Below, in pieces: positions 12,827 to 57,447 of a stretch of 64,000 nucleotides of DNA (position 1 is its first letter; the number at the start of each line of letters is the position of its first letter). Location: NCBI RefSeq assembly GCF_006345805.1, contig NC_042998.1, forward strand, positions 77,500,001 through 77,564,000. Reading direction: 5' to 3'. This DNA is from Octopus sinensis (taxonomy: Eukaryota). The position numbers and the translations under genes were made by a program. Below the pieces are notes generated by a model. The model saw only the letters and a program-made list of their open reading frames with translations. It was not told the origin of the DNA and did not search any database.

Positions 12827-13014
12827 GGGAAAGTTTACGAAAAAAACAAAAGACGAAGACAGGTGGTGTACAAAACAAACAGATGTAATAGTATAGCGCT
12901 CAGGAATAGAAAAGGTCTTTTACGTTTCGAGCCTACGCTCTTCTACAGAAAGGGAAACAGAAAAAAACAAGGAGAGAAAAAAATATGTGTAATGGCTAAC
13001 GATCTCTCTTGGCG
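12827..13014 (-). mobile_element. Hammerhead-bearing short repeat (Penelope pLTR-like terminus) in (TA)n
   Basis: Homologous by eye to 29578-29640, 49538-49880 and 55618-56210. Confidence 0.75.
12916..12952 (-). ncRNA. Minimal type-I hammerhead-like motif, variant core CUGUAGA
   Basis: CUUU-CUGUAGA-A-GAGC(GUAG)GCUC-GAAA-CG-U-A-AAAG: stems I and II pair; palindromic ACGU stem III. Confidence 0.65.
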
Positions 13015-13375
13015 TATACATATACATATACATATATGTATATATATATATATATATGTGTGTGTGTGTGTGTGTGTGTGTGTGTGTATAAGTGTGAATA
13101 TAGAGATAATTAGAAAGCAGCGATGAAACGAATAACGGGGATATACATAGTAAATAAATACATCGATAGTTATTGATATTACAGTATTACATTTAGCTAT
13201 ATTAATTCAGTTCAGAAGGAAAATCTTTTTTTGGGGAGCAGACACGGATGAGAATAGTTGGCTGTTTTGGACGAATGGTTATAATATACTGTAATATATA
13301 AAAATGATTATTGGTGTAATTTCACGTCTGCTGCCTCTATCTGAAAATAGGCTGTAGATTCGACCTATCTATCTA

Positions 13376-13505
13376 TTTATCTATCTATCTATCTATCTAT
13401 CTATCTATCTATCTATCTATCTATCTATCTATCTATCTATCTATCTATCTACCTACCTATTTATCTATCTATCTATCTATCTATCTATCTATCTATCTAT
13501 CTATT
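13376..13505. repeat. (TATC)n microsatellite
   Basis: Direct reading. Confidence 0.95.
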
Positions 13506-14039
13506 TGCCTGTCTGTCTGTCTGCCCGATTGTTCATATATGTATACTTACATACAAATGTGTGGATGTATATATATATATATATATATATATATATATAT
13601 ATATATATACATACATGTACATATACTAGCGTAGAGACACACGCACCACGCACACACTCACACACCTTCTATGTGCTAGTTCTTATTGATATTGCTTGCT
13701 CAGTGCTATAATATGAATTCATAGTTAGTCTGTTAGTCTTTGTTTAACTAACTGTAGCATATGTAAGTTATACAGGTTGTATGATTTATATATACGTATA
13801 CATATCTTTATATACTAACAGATATATCTCTTCTGTGCCAGTGGTGTGAATGATAATTAAGAAGAAAAAAATAGCTATGATGTTAGGAAGATTATGTGTT
13901 TATGTCTCTGTGTGTATTTGTGTTTGTGGGAGTGTACATGTACAAGAGTTATAGGTATTTGTGATGTTGTGTATACAGAAGACCTTTGGATTGGTGGTGA
14001 TGCACACTCTCCCAACTCATGAGTGACATATTTCGCTAC

Positions 14040-14710
14040 TCTAGGCCACATCAAGTTTTGCATAAAGCTTGGTAATACTCACGCTCAAACCATCCAGACT
14101 ATTCAGTAAATGTTTTATGATGATGCCATGGGCAAAACTCAGAAGGGTAGAAGCTCTTCGAACATGGTCGCATCTCAGTGGAGAGCGAGGCATGCTCAGG
14201 CAGGACATCAATAAGCCGAAATAAGGAGTCGATTGAGAAAGTTCGACGACTAGTCCTGGAAGCCTGTCGTAGAAATTACTTTCGAAATGGGAATGAGCAT
14301 ATTCAATTTTAACATTGGTTTTGTGCATGCAAAGAGAGTCGGTATAAAAGTAAAGTTGGATACTTTTTTAACGTACCTCGTAATCCAAGCTTTCCTGGAC
14401 AAGAACAATATACAACTTGTTTAACAGGCACCCTAGTCTCCCGACTTGGCACTGTGTGACCTTTGGCTCTTGTCCAAATTGAAGAACAGGCTGAAAGGGA
14501 AGCGATTTGAATCACGAGAGGAAATTATAACAAAAGTCACGGTGGAGCTCCCTAGCATTCCAGAAAAAGCATTCCGGAGGTGTCAACAGTGGTAGAACCA
14601 CTGAGAGAATCCCCAAGGAAATGTGCTGAAGGCGATTAAATATAATTTGTGAAATGTGCAATTTTTTGTTTCAGGCCCGATGGTCGTATACTTATGGAAC
14701 GCACCTCTTA
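14040..14710 (+). mobile_element. Two abutting mariner fragments, each ending in a 3' TIR plus TA
   Basis: N-terminal IKFCIKLG..EHGRISVESEACSGRTS (14045-14335) then TIR GGATACTTTTTTAACGTACCTCG-TA (14358-14382); C-terminal AP*SPDLALCDLWLLSKLKNRLKGKRF then TIR CGTATACTTATGGAACGCACCTCT-TA (14685-14710). Confidence 0.75.
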
Positions 14711-15869
14711 CATGGACAAAGGAACAATTCATTTAGAGAATTACATCTCGACATATATATAAGTTATATATAACAGCATGTAAAAGTCAAATTTCGCCCA
14801 TGGGTCCCGAGCCTATATCTGTCGATATATCAGGCGTACTTCCATTATGCAAAAGCTTTCCAGTATATCTTAATAAGATAAAAATTTATCATGACTGATC
14901 AAATGCATAATGCATATACATTCATCAACACTATTTTATATGCGCACAAAATGAACACTACTTCACTTCCTCATCACAAAACACCAGAAACAGCTGTAAA
15001 GTGTTGTATGGATTCTCCTTTCTCTTGTGGGTAATGTTACATGAACTCTGCTGGAATCGGCTTGTTTATAAAAACCTGCCATTATAAACTCCGTTCGTTA
15101 TTCCGATTTTATACTATTTTCCCGATAATCATATTTATATTGACTTCTGTGTCTCTAATTTCATAGTTAACTTTATCTATTTCACTTCCCATCTCTCTCT
15201 CTCTCTCTCTCTCTCTCTCTCTCCTCTCTCTCTCTTCTCTAATATACCCAAATATTTCGTCTTTATACACTTCAAGACAGTGCTCCAGTTTAGGTTTGGC
15301 CGTGACACCTAAATGAACCAAAATAAGTCAAGAACCACACACAGAAAAGTAGCTTGGATAATACCAACAGTTAGAAGAACTATACAATCAATATATGTAA
15401 TTAAAGTATATCACGAAAATGTAATAAAAGTACTGACGAGCAGTATTCTATAGTGAAATATCATGCGTGACTGTAAACATGAAAGTCAACTTTAATCAAA
15501 ACATTCTAAACTATTGACAGATACTGAAGAAAGTTTGCTCATGTTTACAACTCTTATCTAAATTGAATAAAATAACATAAAAGGCTAGCGGACAGGGAAA
15601 TCAACAAAAAGAATTATCCAGCAACCACATATCGGGAACATTTCTTGTAAAACAGATTATATAAAAAGAAGTGTCCAAAAAAGACTTTTATCTGTATCGA
15701 CTTCCTTTTGCCTATAAAGCACATGTACAAAGATAAATCAAGTTCATTTTAAGTTTTTTTCTCAAGAAACTAAGTTTGTGAAGAAACGGTTTTTGTGACA
15801 CCCTAGACCTAGGAGATTAAGGAAAATATATAAGATGAACTCTCCCGTCGAAGACAACATATGAGCGTT

Positions 15870-16125
15870 GAACTTTTGTCCAACGACCTGCATACATGGT
15901 TTGTTTATATTGATCAATTGGTCGTGCCACACATTAACACACTCTGTCCATCAAATCAATGTTGTCTGAACAGGTGCACAGTGTACAACACGTCAGGTGT
16001 CAAGGTGATCTCAGAGCAACGTAAGATGAAGTGTTTTGCTCAAGAACACAACAAAATAACCTGTCGAAGGAACTGAAACCACGATCTGGTGATCGTGAGT
16101 GTAACGTCCAATCACTAAGCCACGT
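15870..16125 (-). mobile_element. tRNA-derived SINE
   Basis: Minus strand GTGGCTTAGTGATTGG (A-box like), GGTTTCAGTTCC (B-box like), then GTGTTCTTGAGCAAAACACTT central-domain-like motif. Confidence 0.7.
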
Positions 16126-55617: not shown

Positions 55618-56210
55618 AACGGGAAGGTTTACGAAAATAAACAAAAGACGAAGGCAGGTGGAGTACAAACAAATGTATTAGTATGGCGCTCAGGAATAGA
55701 AATAGAACAAGTCTTTTACGTTTCGAGCCTACGCTCTTCGACAGAAAGATACACAGAAAAGAAACAAGGAGAGAAAAAAATGCGTGTAGGAGCTAACGGT
55801 CCATTATGGCGTACTGACTTCAGGCAGAAGTCAGAGGTTAGACGCTAGAGGGATAGTAGGGGAGATAACAGGGTCAAGTGACTTCGCCCCAACACGAAGG
55901 TCCGTGTGTGTATAAGAGAGTATGTATGTGCGTGTGAAAGAGGGCTGGTGGTCTGGACGTGTGTATGTATGTGTGAGTGTGGAGATATGGGGATGGGTGA
56001 GTGAGTGGTGTGTTGTGATATGATATGTGTATGTATGTGTAGGTGTAAAGATGTGGGGATGGGTGTGTGGGCAGTGTGCTGTGGGTGGTGTGTTGTGATG
56101 TGATGTGTAATGTCGTATGGTTTAGTGTAGTGTGGTGTGATGTTGTGGGGAGGGGGTGCGAGAGTGGGGAAAGCCCATATGGGGTGTGGGTTCGGCTGGG
56201 GGTTGGGGTG
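55618..56210 (-). mobile_element. Hammerhead-bearing repeat with CA-rich upstream region, both ends in (TA)n
   Basis: Longest copy of the family; terminus ..GTAAACCTTCCCGTT then TATATA. Confidence 0.75.
55712..55749 (-). ncRNA. Minimal hammerhead-like motif, variant core CUGUCGA
   Basis: UCUUU-CUGUCGA-A-GAGC(GUAG)GCUC-GAAA-CG-U-A-AAAGA; 5-bp stem I and 4-bp stem II perfect. Confidence 0.7.
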
Positions 56211-56636
56211 TATATATATATATACAGTCAAAAATTGTGAAGCATGACTGTCAACACTACTACATGAACCCGAAGATTGCAGAATTCAATGCATGAAAGT
56301 ACTAGTTCAATCAGAATGAATATTTAACATTCTACTATTTCATTTTATTTTATTCAATTATAATATATTATCTTATAATATATCATTATAAGATTGTAAA
56401 TAAAACGTGAAAATCAGACAGGTTGGAATTCTTTTTATAATATATATATATATATATAATATATATATATATATACCAATTAAGGACTGAACACGAAAAG
56501 GTGGACAGTCAACATGCTAGATATAGACGTCAAATCGCCATTCTCCACAAGGATTATGTTCTCAAATAAAAATAAAATTCAGCACGACCTAAAGCAATGG
56601 ATGAGACAAAAGAAATATACTAAATGGAATAATTAC

Positions 56637-56696
56637 CTACGTACTGCAGTTTCAGCTATTAATATCACAAGGATATCTGTAGCTTCATCAGCGTAG
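56637..56696 (-). ncRNA. Intact type-I hammerhead ribozyme (minus-strand copy)
   Basis: Reverse complement of 57058-57117. Confidence 0.88.
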
Positions 56697-57057
56697 TTTG
56701 TTATGAGCATAATATGCTGTACTAGATGAAAAACGGTACCGGAGTCCCGCATGCAAAAAGTACAACCTATTACGTTCGGATGTATCTTTCGAATGCCTCT
56801 ACTTTTGGCGCGCTGATAATCTGGTTTTAATTGACTAATATCAATTTCTACCCTTAATTTTTAAATATGAAATATATGTTCTCAAACCGATAAATTGACT
56901 GCTGCTAATTATTGGCTGCAGGCTAGTTTTTCGATTATCAGCGCGCCAAAAGTAGAGGCATTCGAAAGATACATCCGAACGTAATAGGTTGTACTTTTTG
57001 CATGCGGGACTCCGGTACCGTTTTTCATCTAGTACAGCATATTATGCTCATAACAAA

Positions 57058-57117
57058 CTACGCTGATGAAGCTACAGATATCCTTGTGATATTAATAGCT
57101 GAAACTGCAGTACGTAG
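57058..57117 (+). ncRNA. Intact type-I hammerhead ribozyme
   Basis: CUACG-CUGAUGA-AGCUA(ca GAUAUC cuugu GAUAUU aa)UAGCU-GAAA-CUGCAG-UA-CGUAG: all core positions canonical, stems I and II perfect, stem III palindromic ACUGCAGU. Confidence 0.88.
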
Positions 57118-57447
57118 GTAATTATTCCATTTAGTATATTTCTTTTGTCTCATCCATTGCTTTAGGTCGTGCTGAATTTTATTTTTATTTGAGAACATAA
57201 TCCTTGTGGAGAATGGCGATTTGACGTCTATATCTAGCATGTTGACTGTCCACCTTTTCGTGTTCAGTCCTTAATTGGTATATATAAATATTTTAATCTT
57301 CGGATTCTTTTTAATGTGCTAGACCACTGGTTTTAATTGACTAATATCAATTTCTACCCTTAATTTTTAAATATATATATATATATATATATGAAAAATG
57401 TATGGTAAATAACATACCATACGATATAGCACATACTGAGTGTAAAA

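Follow-up and report, generated by a model that had tools for sequence, protein, structure and literature searches.

We analysed a window of 64,000 nt from Octopus sinensis (RefSeq assembly GCF_006345805.1, contig NC_042998.1, positions 77,500,001 to 77,564,000 of the forward strand), and all coordinates given here are positions in that window. It belongs to a eukaryotic, invertebrate-type genome rich in microsatellites: the sequence is AT-rich, with a GC content of approximately 28-47% per 2-kb bin, and is crowded with dinucleotide repeats, including 64 TA-rich loci that account for 4.3% of its bases. Sequences related to the type-I hammerhead ribozyme (HHR), several inverted repeats and two GIY-YIG endonuclease relics are scattered through it. 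Very probably the window records at least seven independent insertions of Penelope-like elements (PLEs) and of short non-autonomous repeats derived from them. A preliminary description, made from the letters alone, had listed eight hammerhead motifs of about five sequence types and had joined them into a window-wide coupled system.

The only complete canonical type-I HHR sequence in the window is a single sequence that is present twice, in the two arms of one fold-back:

56468-57286 (no strand): fold-back made of two head-to-head 3′-terminal element copies, the arms lying around a unique centre
57058-57117 (+): complete canonical type-I hammerhead, with zero defects by descriptor
56637-56696 (-): identical twin hammerhead in the other arm
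57279-57374 (+): right flank of the fold-back, comprising a one-ended stretch and a direct repeat

Over their 354 bp the minus-strand arm (56468-56821) and the plus-strand arm (56933-57286) show 100% identity, and they enclose a unique, asymmetric centre of 111 bp (56822-56932); the outer ends (CCAATTAAGG... and ...CCTTAATTGG) both adjoin TA repeats. Each site was scored against a type-I HHR descriptor that spelled out helix I, CUGANGA, helix II, GAAA, A15.1...U16.1 and H17, and dinucleotide shuffles within 2-kb blocks, in sets of 60 or 100 shuffled windows, served as controls. The hammerhead at 57058 reads CUACG-CUGAUGA-AGCUA-(21 nt)-UAGCU-GAAA-CUGCAG-UA-CGUAG, and all of its core positions are canonical (C3, U4, G5, A6, N7, G8 and A9; G12, A13 and A14; the A15.1-U16.1 pair; and A17 at H17). 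Helix I (CUACG/CGUAG) and helix II (AGCUA/UAGCU, with a 21-nt loop) each consist of 5 bp, helix III is the exact palindrome A-CUGCAG-U, and the cleavage site is predicted to follow position 57112. A palindromic helix III is in the style of metazoan and PLE hammerheads, which are thought to act as dimers. The two hammerheads face outward, and the count of zero-defect motifs was nil in both the 60 and the 100 shuffled windows.

The fold-back is a young insertion. A tail-like stretch of 48 nt (57279-57326) is present at its right end only and fits a one-sided tail. We also noted a 48-nt exact direct repeat, in which 56821-56868, at the start of the centre, recurs at 57327-57374, 48 nt past the right arm. 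This repeat was considered as a target duplication arising from priming on both target strands and was rejected in that role, as neither order of staggered nicks gives the observed layout. Upstream of the HHR the arm has an open frame of 64 codons with one CxxC, which is not significant. No further copy of the fold-back was found by self-BLAST of the window, or of its hammerhead by a search of metagenome contigs.

The preliminary description had proposed a comparison of motif density with dinucleotide-shuffled sequence. Overall the density is not elevated, but the zero-defect site has no counterpart in 60-100 shuffles, and the signal sits in particular sequences. A plain scan for the core and helix II returned 57063(+), 56691(-) and one weak site only, and with one core mismatch allowed there were 8 relaxed hits against 5.0 in shuffles. 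The full-anatomy descriptor, which counts defects, gave two zero-defect sites in the window (0 in 60 shuffles) and, at the two-defect level, 10 sites against 4.0 ± 1.6 expected. Seven of these ten are absent from the preliminary list, which contributed 12948, 55744 and 44845 only; 49614 requires three defects, a level that 41 sites of the window reach, and 46466 and 48946 fail the descriptor altogether.

Rfam, likewise proposed as a check, reported no hammerhead in the whole window at gathering thresholds and none among the best 150 matches listed at E<=10. As a positive control, an undisputed PLE hammerhead from a relative of the element at 46.7-48.15 kb described below (L001) scored 15.4 bits against a gathering threshold of 48.5, and because this control was itself nearly missed the Rfam negative carries no weight: the models are insensitive to the PLE type. 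Rfam thus misses even perfect PLE-type hammerheads, and descriptor or custom-model searches are needed for them. The permissive output consisted of microsatellite hairpins scoring as microRNA (miRNA) families, with palindromic compound microsatellites of the form (TG)n(TA)n(CA)n reaching up to 72 bits against mir-297, mir-466, mir-3149 and mir-5014 (for example at 12711-12804, 28742-28812, 44985-45064 and 60311-60478). All of these scores are below gathering, and the matches are low-complexity artefacts, not miRNA genes.

Two related families of short repeats, A and B, account for four of the eight full motifs and share a mutated minimal hammerhead (min-HHR) scaffold:

12827-13016 (-): family A copy of about 190 bp with microsatellites on both sides and its 3′ end in (TA)n; scaffold at 12914-12955, with U at core position 6
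55620-55813 (-): family A copy whose 3′ end lies in a TA locus of 215 bp; scaffold at 55710-55751, A6 to U
49538-49686 (-): family A copy that ends 3′ in (TA)n; scaffold at 49580-49621, A6 to U plus G10.1 to U
29578-29666 (-): truncated family A copy, degenerate and with no hammerhead block that can be recognised; (TA)n at its 3′ end
49268-49303 (+): 3′-terminal family A fragment in the opposite orientation, ending in a 128-bp TA locus just upstream of the 49.6 kb copy
46401-46594 (+): family B, related to family A and represented by this one copy, which ends 3′ in (TA)n; scaffold at 46465-46505, U4 to C, with a weak helix I

A block of 38-42 nt is common to three family A copies and family B. 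It takes the form CUGU-N-GA-A-GAGC-loop-GCUC-GAAA-CG-UA in family A (A6 to U) and CCGACGA-A-GAGC-UCC-GCUC-GAAA-CG-UC in family B (U4 to C), and every copy has GAGC/GCUC, with its G10.1-C11.1 pair, and the palindromic A-CG-U, except for the G10.1 to U change in the 49.6 kb copy. The catalytic core is intact in none of them, all three family A scaffold copies bearing A6 to U and family B bearing U4 to C, and these substitutions should abolish cleavage. Sites with one core mismatch, the bulge being allowed, numbered 3 against 0.17 expected from shuffles; by motif alone, families A and B are weak evidence for a hammerhead.

Further evidence came from outside the window, where a search pattern taken from family A, with positions 6 and 7, the loop, H17 and the flanks left free, retrieved the scaffold at 89 loci in metagenome contigs. 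Though the pattern did not constrain it, position 6 is A in 89 of 89 of these copies; N7 is C, G, A or U, and H17 is never G. An extra unpaired A between A9 and 10.1 is present in all four window copies and in all 89 outside copies, in which the search pattern fixed it. The 1.2-2.2 pair of helix I is CG in 38 outside copies, GC in 12 and AU in two, with U-A in family A, and helix I pairing drops when the partner is slid by one position. Stem covariation, another of the checks proposed at the outset, is therefore seen in helix I of the outside copies, whereas the 57058 type is known from two identical copies only and its helix covariation is thus not readable. A covariance model built solely from the outside copies picked exactly the four family A and B sites in the window (E 4.6e-7, 2.2e-6, 7.8e-6 and 3.7e-3, the next best having E>1), scores that are partly circular in that the outside set was retrieved with the family A pattern. 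The outside scaffold is thus a genuine and widespread hammerhead, and the window sites at 12914, 49580, 55710 and 46465 are real derivatives of it. Family A was not found in viral contigs.

The block is far better conserved than its surroundings in family A: 79 of 152 flank columns vary, but only 2 of the 38 columns of the block (P ~3e-8), and N7, a free position, is one of the 2. The copies have preserved the ACGU palindrome and the bulged A as well as helices I and II. The scaffold may have been under strong constraint although every copy has U at the essential A6, its hammerhead fold being retained, if this holds genome-wide, for a role other than cleavage, for instance to be recognised by the PLE reverse transcriptase (RT) and endonuclease (EN) or to initiate their action; we consider this unlikely. 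Alternatively, U6 may be tolerated in a dimeric min-HHR. The constrained A6U scaffold, resting on three copies, is the one mildly new point here. We also considered family A as a short interspersed nuclear element, as GGCUCGAAAC resembles the B box of an RNA polymerase III promoter, and rejected this reading: there is no A box, and the hammerhead scaffold explains the block better. The 128-bp TA locus (49305-49432) separates the fragment at 49268-49303(+) from the copy at 49538-49686(-), whose own 3′ end adjoins a separate short TA tract (49525-49537), and the two may be independent insertions into neighbouring microsatellites.

The protein-coding traces of PLEs in the window lie at 46.7-48.15 kb and near 19 kb:

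46685-47912 (-): 5′-truncated Hydra-clade PLE, with an EN tail followed by a 3′ region of about 680 nt ending in (TA)n
47923-48152 (+): inverted, 5′-truncated copy of the last ~230 nt of this element, head-to-head with it (89% identity to 46670-46905) and containing the half motif 47961-47980
18702-19328 (+): second PLE EN relic, the tail of an open reading frame (ORF) with one stop codon, of a different lineage

The EN tail is open over 47367-47912(-), and an ATG-started ORF of 152 aa occupies 47364-47822(-). Because full-length homology runs upstream of this ATG to ~47897, the copy is a 5′-truncated ORF tail and no stand-alone gene. The open frame of 182 codons persists at ~28% GC, where stops should be frequent, which suggests that the truncated copy is young. 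The 47.4 kb ORF had no match in Pfam, among PDB sequences or in a word-indexed protein search; an exhaustive HMMER search with it recovered a family of 1152 representatives. Long members of this family (P0027 and P0138, ~760 aa) combine an upstream RT-like region (DKT, FDIENYY, YRDDG) with the C-terminal domain of the 47.4 kb ORF. The RT of these two relatives went unrecognised when their sequences were searched against Pfam and PDB, and a profile search against PDB was uninformative; a Pfam GIY-YIG match was obtained for 8 of 30 family members. The family consensus, CNCRxxxxC...VVYxAxV...YxGxT...CxLCxxE...LNxRxExxxxCRH, contains CxCX5C, no Cys between GIY and YIG, and CxxC...E...N...CxH. In the window copy at 46.7 kb the linker is degenerate, the terminal CxH is missing and the C-terminus is already disrupted; a hidden Markov model (HMM) trace goes on in another frame (47300-47464), though at E=10 it is not significant.

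When the HMM of the family EN was run on six-frame pieces of the window it matched 47367-47912 (E 1.5e-35) and 18999-19328 (E 4e-6), so that the GIY-YIG relics at 18.8 and 47.4 kb reported in the preliminary description are real. BLASTP of the two relics against each other showed no similarity, and the link between them is through the family HMM only. Neither a hammerhead nor a TA tract was found downstream of the 18702-19328 relic; a CT-rich tract lies there at 19400-19530. Six intact relatives (L001, L002 and L004-L007) have a zero-defect HHR overlapping the end of the ORF. In L001, the sole one read through at its 3′ end, a (TA)n tract terminates the element ~45 nt further on, and a second, inverted copy is present in L004. 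The diagnostics of the Hydra clade are DKT, CxCX5C, no CCHH, CxxC/CxH, canonical HHRs and (TA)n insertion (Craig et al. 2021, PMC8557442), and it is by these motifs, not by a phylogeny, that the 46.7-48.15 kb element is placed in this clade.

Termination in (TA)n and head-to-head arrangement, both pointed out in the preliminary description, recur across these elements. Only 6.3% of the positions in the window are within 10 nt of a TA locus, yet such a locus adjoins at least 9 of 12 element ends (binomial P ~3e-9), and self-BLAST and arm alignment bore out the placement of motif copies in inverted repeats. At 15 of the 89 outside min-HHR loci there is an inverted partial copy with its junction 22-39 nt upstream (e.g. 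L019, L020 and L049 of L008-L096), and an EN domain lies upstream of one of the 89. Head-to-head copies are thus general, and the TA association, which the outside min-HHR family does not share and which is therefore lineage- or genome-dependent, is a trait of this genome's lineages. The 15 junctions at the ribozyme imply that 5′ truncation or template switching often falls right at the hammerhead, and such ribozyme-edge junctions might have a bearing on the hammerhead-like apex string of the 48.7-49.15 kb fold-back. A further fold-back, 43025-43342 / 43523-43851, has arms of ~320 bp with 90% identity and lies in TA-rich tracts; no hammerhead-like motif or coding relic was found in it, so that fold-backs in TA repeats are not limited to carriers of hammerheads.

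Two further candidates on the preliminary list differ in quality:

44840-44887 (+): singleton probable hammerhead with an exact core, a helix II of 6 bp, a helix III that is a 3-bp hairpin and a helix I of 4 bp
48720-49150 (no strand): older fold-back with arms of ~190 bp, (TA)n on its left and (CT)n(TA)n on its right

The motif at 44840 is probably a degenerate hammerhead, its mismatches falling at closing pairs (C.C at 10.1/11.1 and A.G at 1.1/2.1), and core-exact sites with tolerances of this type occur at 0.05 per shuffled window. A (CA)n/(TA)n tract begins ~95 nt downstream. Local alignment of the 44.8 kb element with families A and B, the fold-back arm and the 19 kb 3′ region gave CT-rich low-complexity similarity only. 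At the apex of 48720-49150 the hammerhead-like string (48947-48985) has G12 to A and no 15.2-16.2 pair and, as the 48946 motif, fails even the three-defect descriptor that 41 other window sites pass; the membership of this fold-back in the same element class is uncertain. The half motifs placed at 46844 and 47961 (46846-46865 and 47961-47980) comprise GAAAC, a palindrome and UA only, strings of which ~2 are expected per window by chance by our estimate, and no 5′ half was found near either. Two other hammerhead-like sites are consistent with the chance background: 21785(+), with one core mismatch (G8 to C) and helices I and II present, and 6871(-), with an exact core, a 3-bp helix II and no helix I. 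CT-rich tracts (TTTTTTCTG..., TCTCTCC...) lie upstream of hammerhead or hammerhead-like blocks at 44700-44790, at 46400-46460 and in the 5′ parts of family A, and these tracts, like that at 19400-19530, may be something that PLE 3′ regions have in common, or simply low complexity.

The eight motifs thus resolve into an intact pair (57058/56637), four HHR-derived sites with a core substitution (12916, 49582, 55712 and 46466), a probable one (44840) and one that we do not retain (48946), and the roughly five sequence types reduce to two well-supported types plus one probable singleton. The remainder of the window contains many LINE-type RT/EN fragments on both strands (6.9-9.0, 11.7-12.3, 16.2-17.5, 26.5-27.9, 33.3-35.9, 40.7-42.9 and 50.3-52.5 kb), three of which are Pfam RVT_1 matches, and no host gene was recognised in it.

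The attribution of the motifs to PLEs and short PLE-derived repeats, already made in the preliminary description, agrees with the published hallmarks of these elements. PLEs are characterised by 5′ truncation, an adjacent inverted truncated copy, a 30-40 bp tail and an insertion bias towards microsatellites or (TA)n (PMC8557442), and by HHRs in their terminal repeats, with dual opposite-strand HHRs 100-700 bp apart (PMC4209133, PMC8557442); (TA)n insertion is on record for two clades, Hydra and Naiad, and has been proposed for a third, Neptune (PMC8557442). With purified PLE protein both strands of the target are cut and extended and reverse transcription begins internally, giving the 30-40 bp tail (Frangieh et al. 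2024, PMC11167929), and catalytic mutants of the HHR still insert in vitro (PMC11167929). By analogy, the GIY-YIG EN would be directed by its Cys-rich linker to (TA)n tracts, both DNA strands would be cut, and from each of the two 3′-OH ends reverse transcription would start close to the 3′ end of the element RNA. Two 5′-truncated complementary DNAs growing toward each other would then yield, in a single event, inverted repeats with identical arms and their 3′ ends outward; we infer that the layout of 56468-57286 is exactly what two-strand priming at a (TA)n break would give. The hammerhead would be copied as part of the 3′ or pseudo-long terminal repeat (pseudo-LTR) region and, in RNA, could process multimeric transcripts as a dimer formed through the palindromic helix III. 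Were cleavage unnecessary for insertion, families with dead cores (A6U, U4C) could still spread. As the window holds no PLE RT, mobilisation of the short families in trans, by PLE enzymes encoded elsewhere in the genome, is something we infer. Double-stranded RNA from the fold-back is possible in principle.

Several observations weigh against this account. Within the 46685-47912 element no hammerhead with two or fewer defects was found, only a half motif. The EN HMM detected no protein relic beside families A and B, the 44.8 kb and 48.9 kb motifs or the fold-back arms, and because no such relic adjoins them the assignment of the arms, of A and B and of the 44.8 kb element to PLEs rests on ribozyme type and architecture. 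The window contains no PLE RT, the 46.7 kb copy being truncated at ~47912, and none of the 89 outside min-HHR loci has a (TA)n end. No copy of the intact 57058 hammerhead was found in metagenome contigs; with its two copies identical and none outside, covariation is unusable and self-cleavage is a prediction. Rfam at E<=10 gave no hammerhead match on a 191-nt slice around 57058, although it is insensitive here, as the L001 control shows. The 48-nt direct repeat between centre and flank is not simply predicted by dual priming.

Among other explanations, the hammerhead carriers could be animal (non-LTR) retrozymes, that is, non-autonomous tandem repeats whose RNA is self-cleaved at two hammerheads, circularised and reverse-transcribed; the preliminary description had allowed for circular RNAs. 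Their type-I hammerheads are of the sort common to PLE pseudo-LTRs and retrozymes, the units here are short and non-coding, and a 2026 preprint derives retrozymes from PLE pseudo-LTRs. The defining tandem direct units, each with an HHR, are however absent from self-BLAST and motif maps: the sole intact pair is inverted, same-strand neighbours are different families 0.9-1.6 kb apart, and the cores of families A and B are mutated, all of which leaves this origin quite improbable. The fold-backs (56468-57286, perhaps 48720-49150 and 43025-43851) might instead be fold-back DNA transposons or miniature inverted-repeat transposable elements that insert at TA, the hammerhead being a captured PLE passenger. 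Perfect 354-bp terminal inverted repeats, the absence of coding capacity and the hammerhead-free fold-back at 43025-43851 in TA repeats would all suit such elements, as would the TA flanks, which are compatible with a TA target duplication, though one is unreadable inside (TA)n. Both hammerheads nevertheless face outward, as two 3′-terminal retro-copies primed from both strands would, and the same layout is seen in the PLE-ORF element at 46.7-48.15 kb, in the relative L004, at 15 of the 89 outside loci and in the literature; the centre is asymmetric and no transposase relic was found, so that we hold a DNA transposon origin to be improbable.

It is hardly credible that most motifs are the product of chance in AT-rich, repeat-rich DNA and the perfect palindrome an assembly artefact. 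The relaxed motif density does equal that of shuffles, chance suffices for 48946 and for the half motifs, Rfam gives no hammerhead match, and arms of 100% identity could stem from a mis-assembled hairpin read. A zero-defect motif, by contrast, never arose in 60-100 shuffles, the 89 outside homologues of the A/B scaffold have a canonical core, the scaffold is much more strongly conserved than the sequence flanking it, and a 111-bp asymmetric centre with distinct flanks is unlike a read-level palindrome artefact.

Insertion of PLEs and PLE-derived repeats remains our preferred explanation, and under it everything that was proposed as a coupled system is published PLE anatomy: the window contains independent insertions of one transposon class with published hallmarks, though the specific families in it are probably undescribed. 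For annotation, the TA microsatellites, fold-backs and scattered hammerheads of this genome can be masked and classified together. The fold-back with identical 354-bp arms is a clean natural example of the expected product of dual-strand PLE priming. The conserved dead-core scaffold of family A bears on the open question of what hammerheads do in PLEs and, whether the fold has a role other than cleavage or U6 is tolerated, would be an evolutionary counterpart to the in vitro insertion by HHR catalytic mutants.

In comparison with known systems, the closest match to the protein family of the 47.4 kb ORF is with the Hydra-clade PLEs (Craig, Yushenova, Rodriguez & Arkhipova 2021, PMC8557442), with which it shares CxCX5C, the lack of CCHH between GIY and YIG, and CxxC/CxH around E and N. 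Full-length relatives also share DKT, relatives share the canonical hammerheads, and the 46.7-48.15 kb element shares (TA)n insertion, 5′ truncation and an adjacent inverted truncated copy. The window copy differs in that it has no RT, a degenerate linker, a C-terminus that ends early and no recognisable hammerhead. With animal non-LTR retrozymes the window elements share the type of hammerhead and a probable origin from PLE terminal repeats, but there are no tandem direct repeats here and hence no route from these loci to a unit-length circular RNA.

Families A and B resemble the PLE min-HHR (Cervera & de la Pena 2014, PMC4209133) in the unpaired nucleotide between A9 and 10.1, the G10.1-C11.1 pair, the short helix I and the palindromic A-CG-U in place of a real helix III, and they are likewise scattered as single elements from truncated PLEs. 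They depart from it in the U at the invariant A6 in all three copies of family A and the C at U4 in family B, while the 57058 motif departs from it in having A10.1-U11.1 and no bulged nucleotide. The fold-back shares with PLEs of shrimp, rotifer and mosquito (PMC4209133) the dual motifs on opposite strands a few hundred bp apart and the small palindromic helix III. The Poseidon PLE protein (Frangieh et al. 2024, PMC11167929) belongs to another PLE clade and was studied in vitro; it offers a mechanism for identical head-to-head arms with a one-sided 30-40 bp tail, and the dispensability of HHR catalysis in that system matches the dead core of family A.

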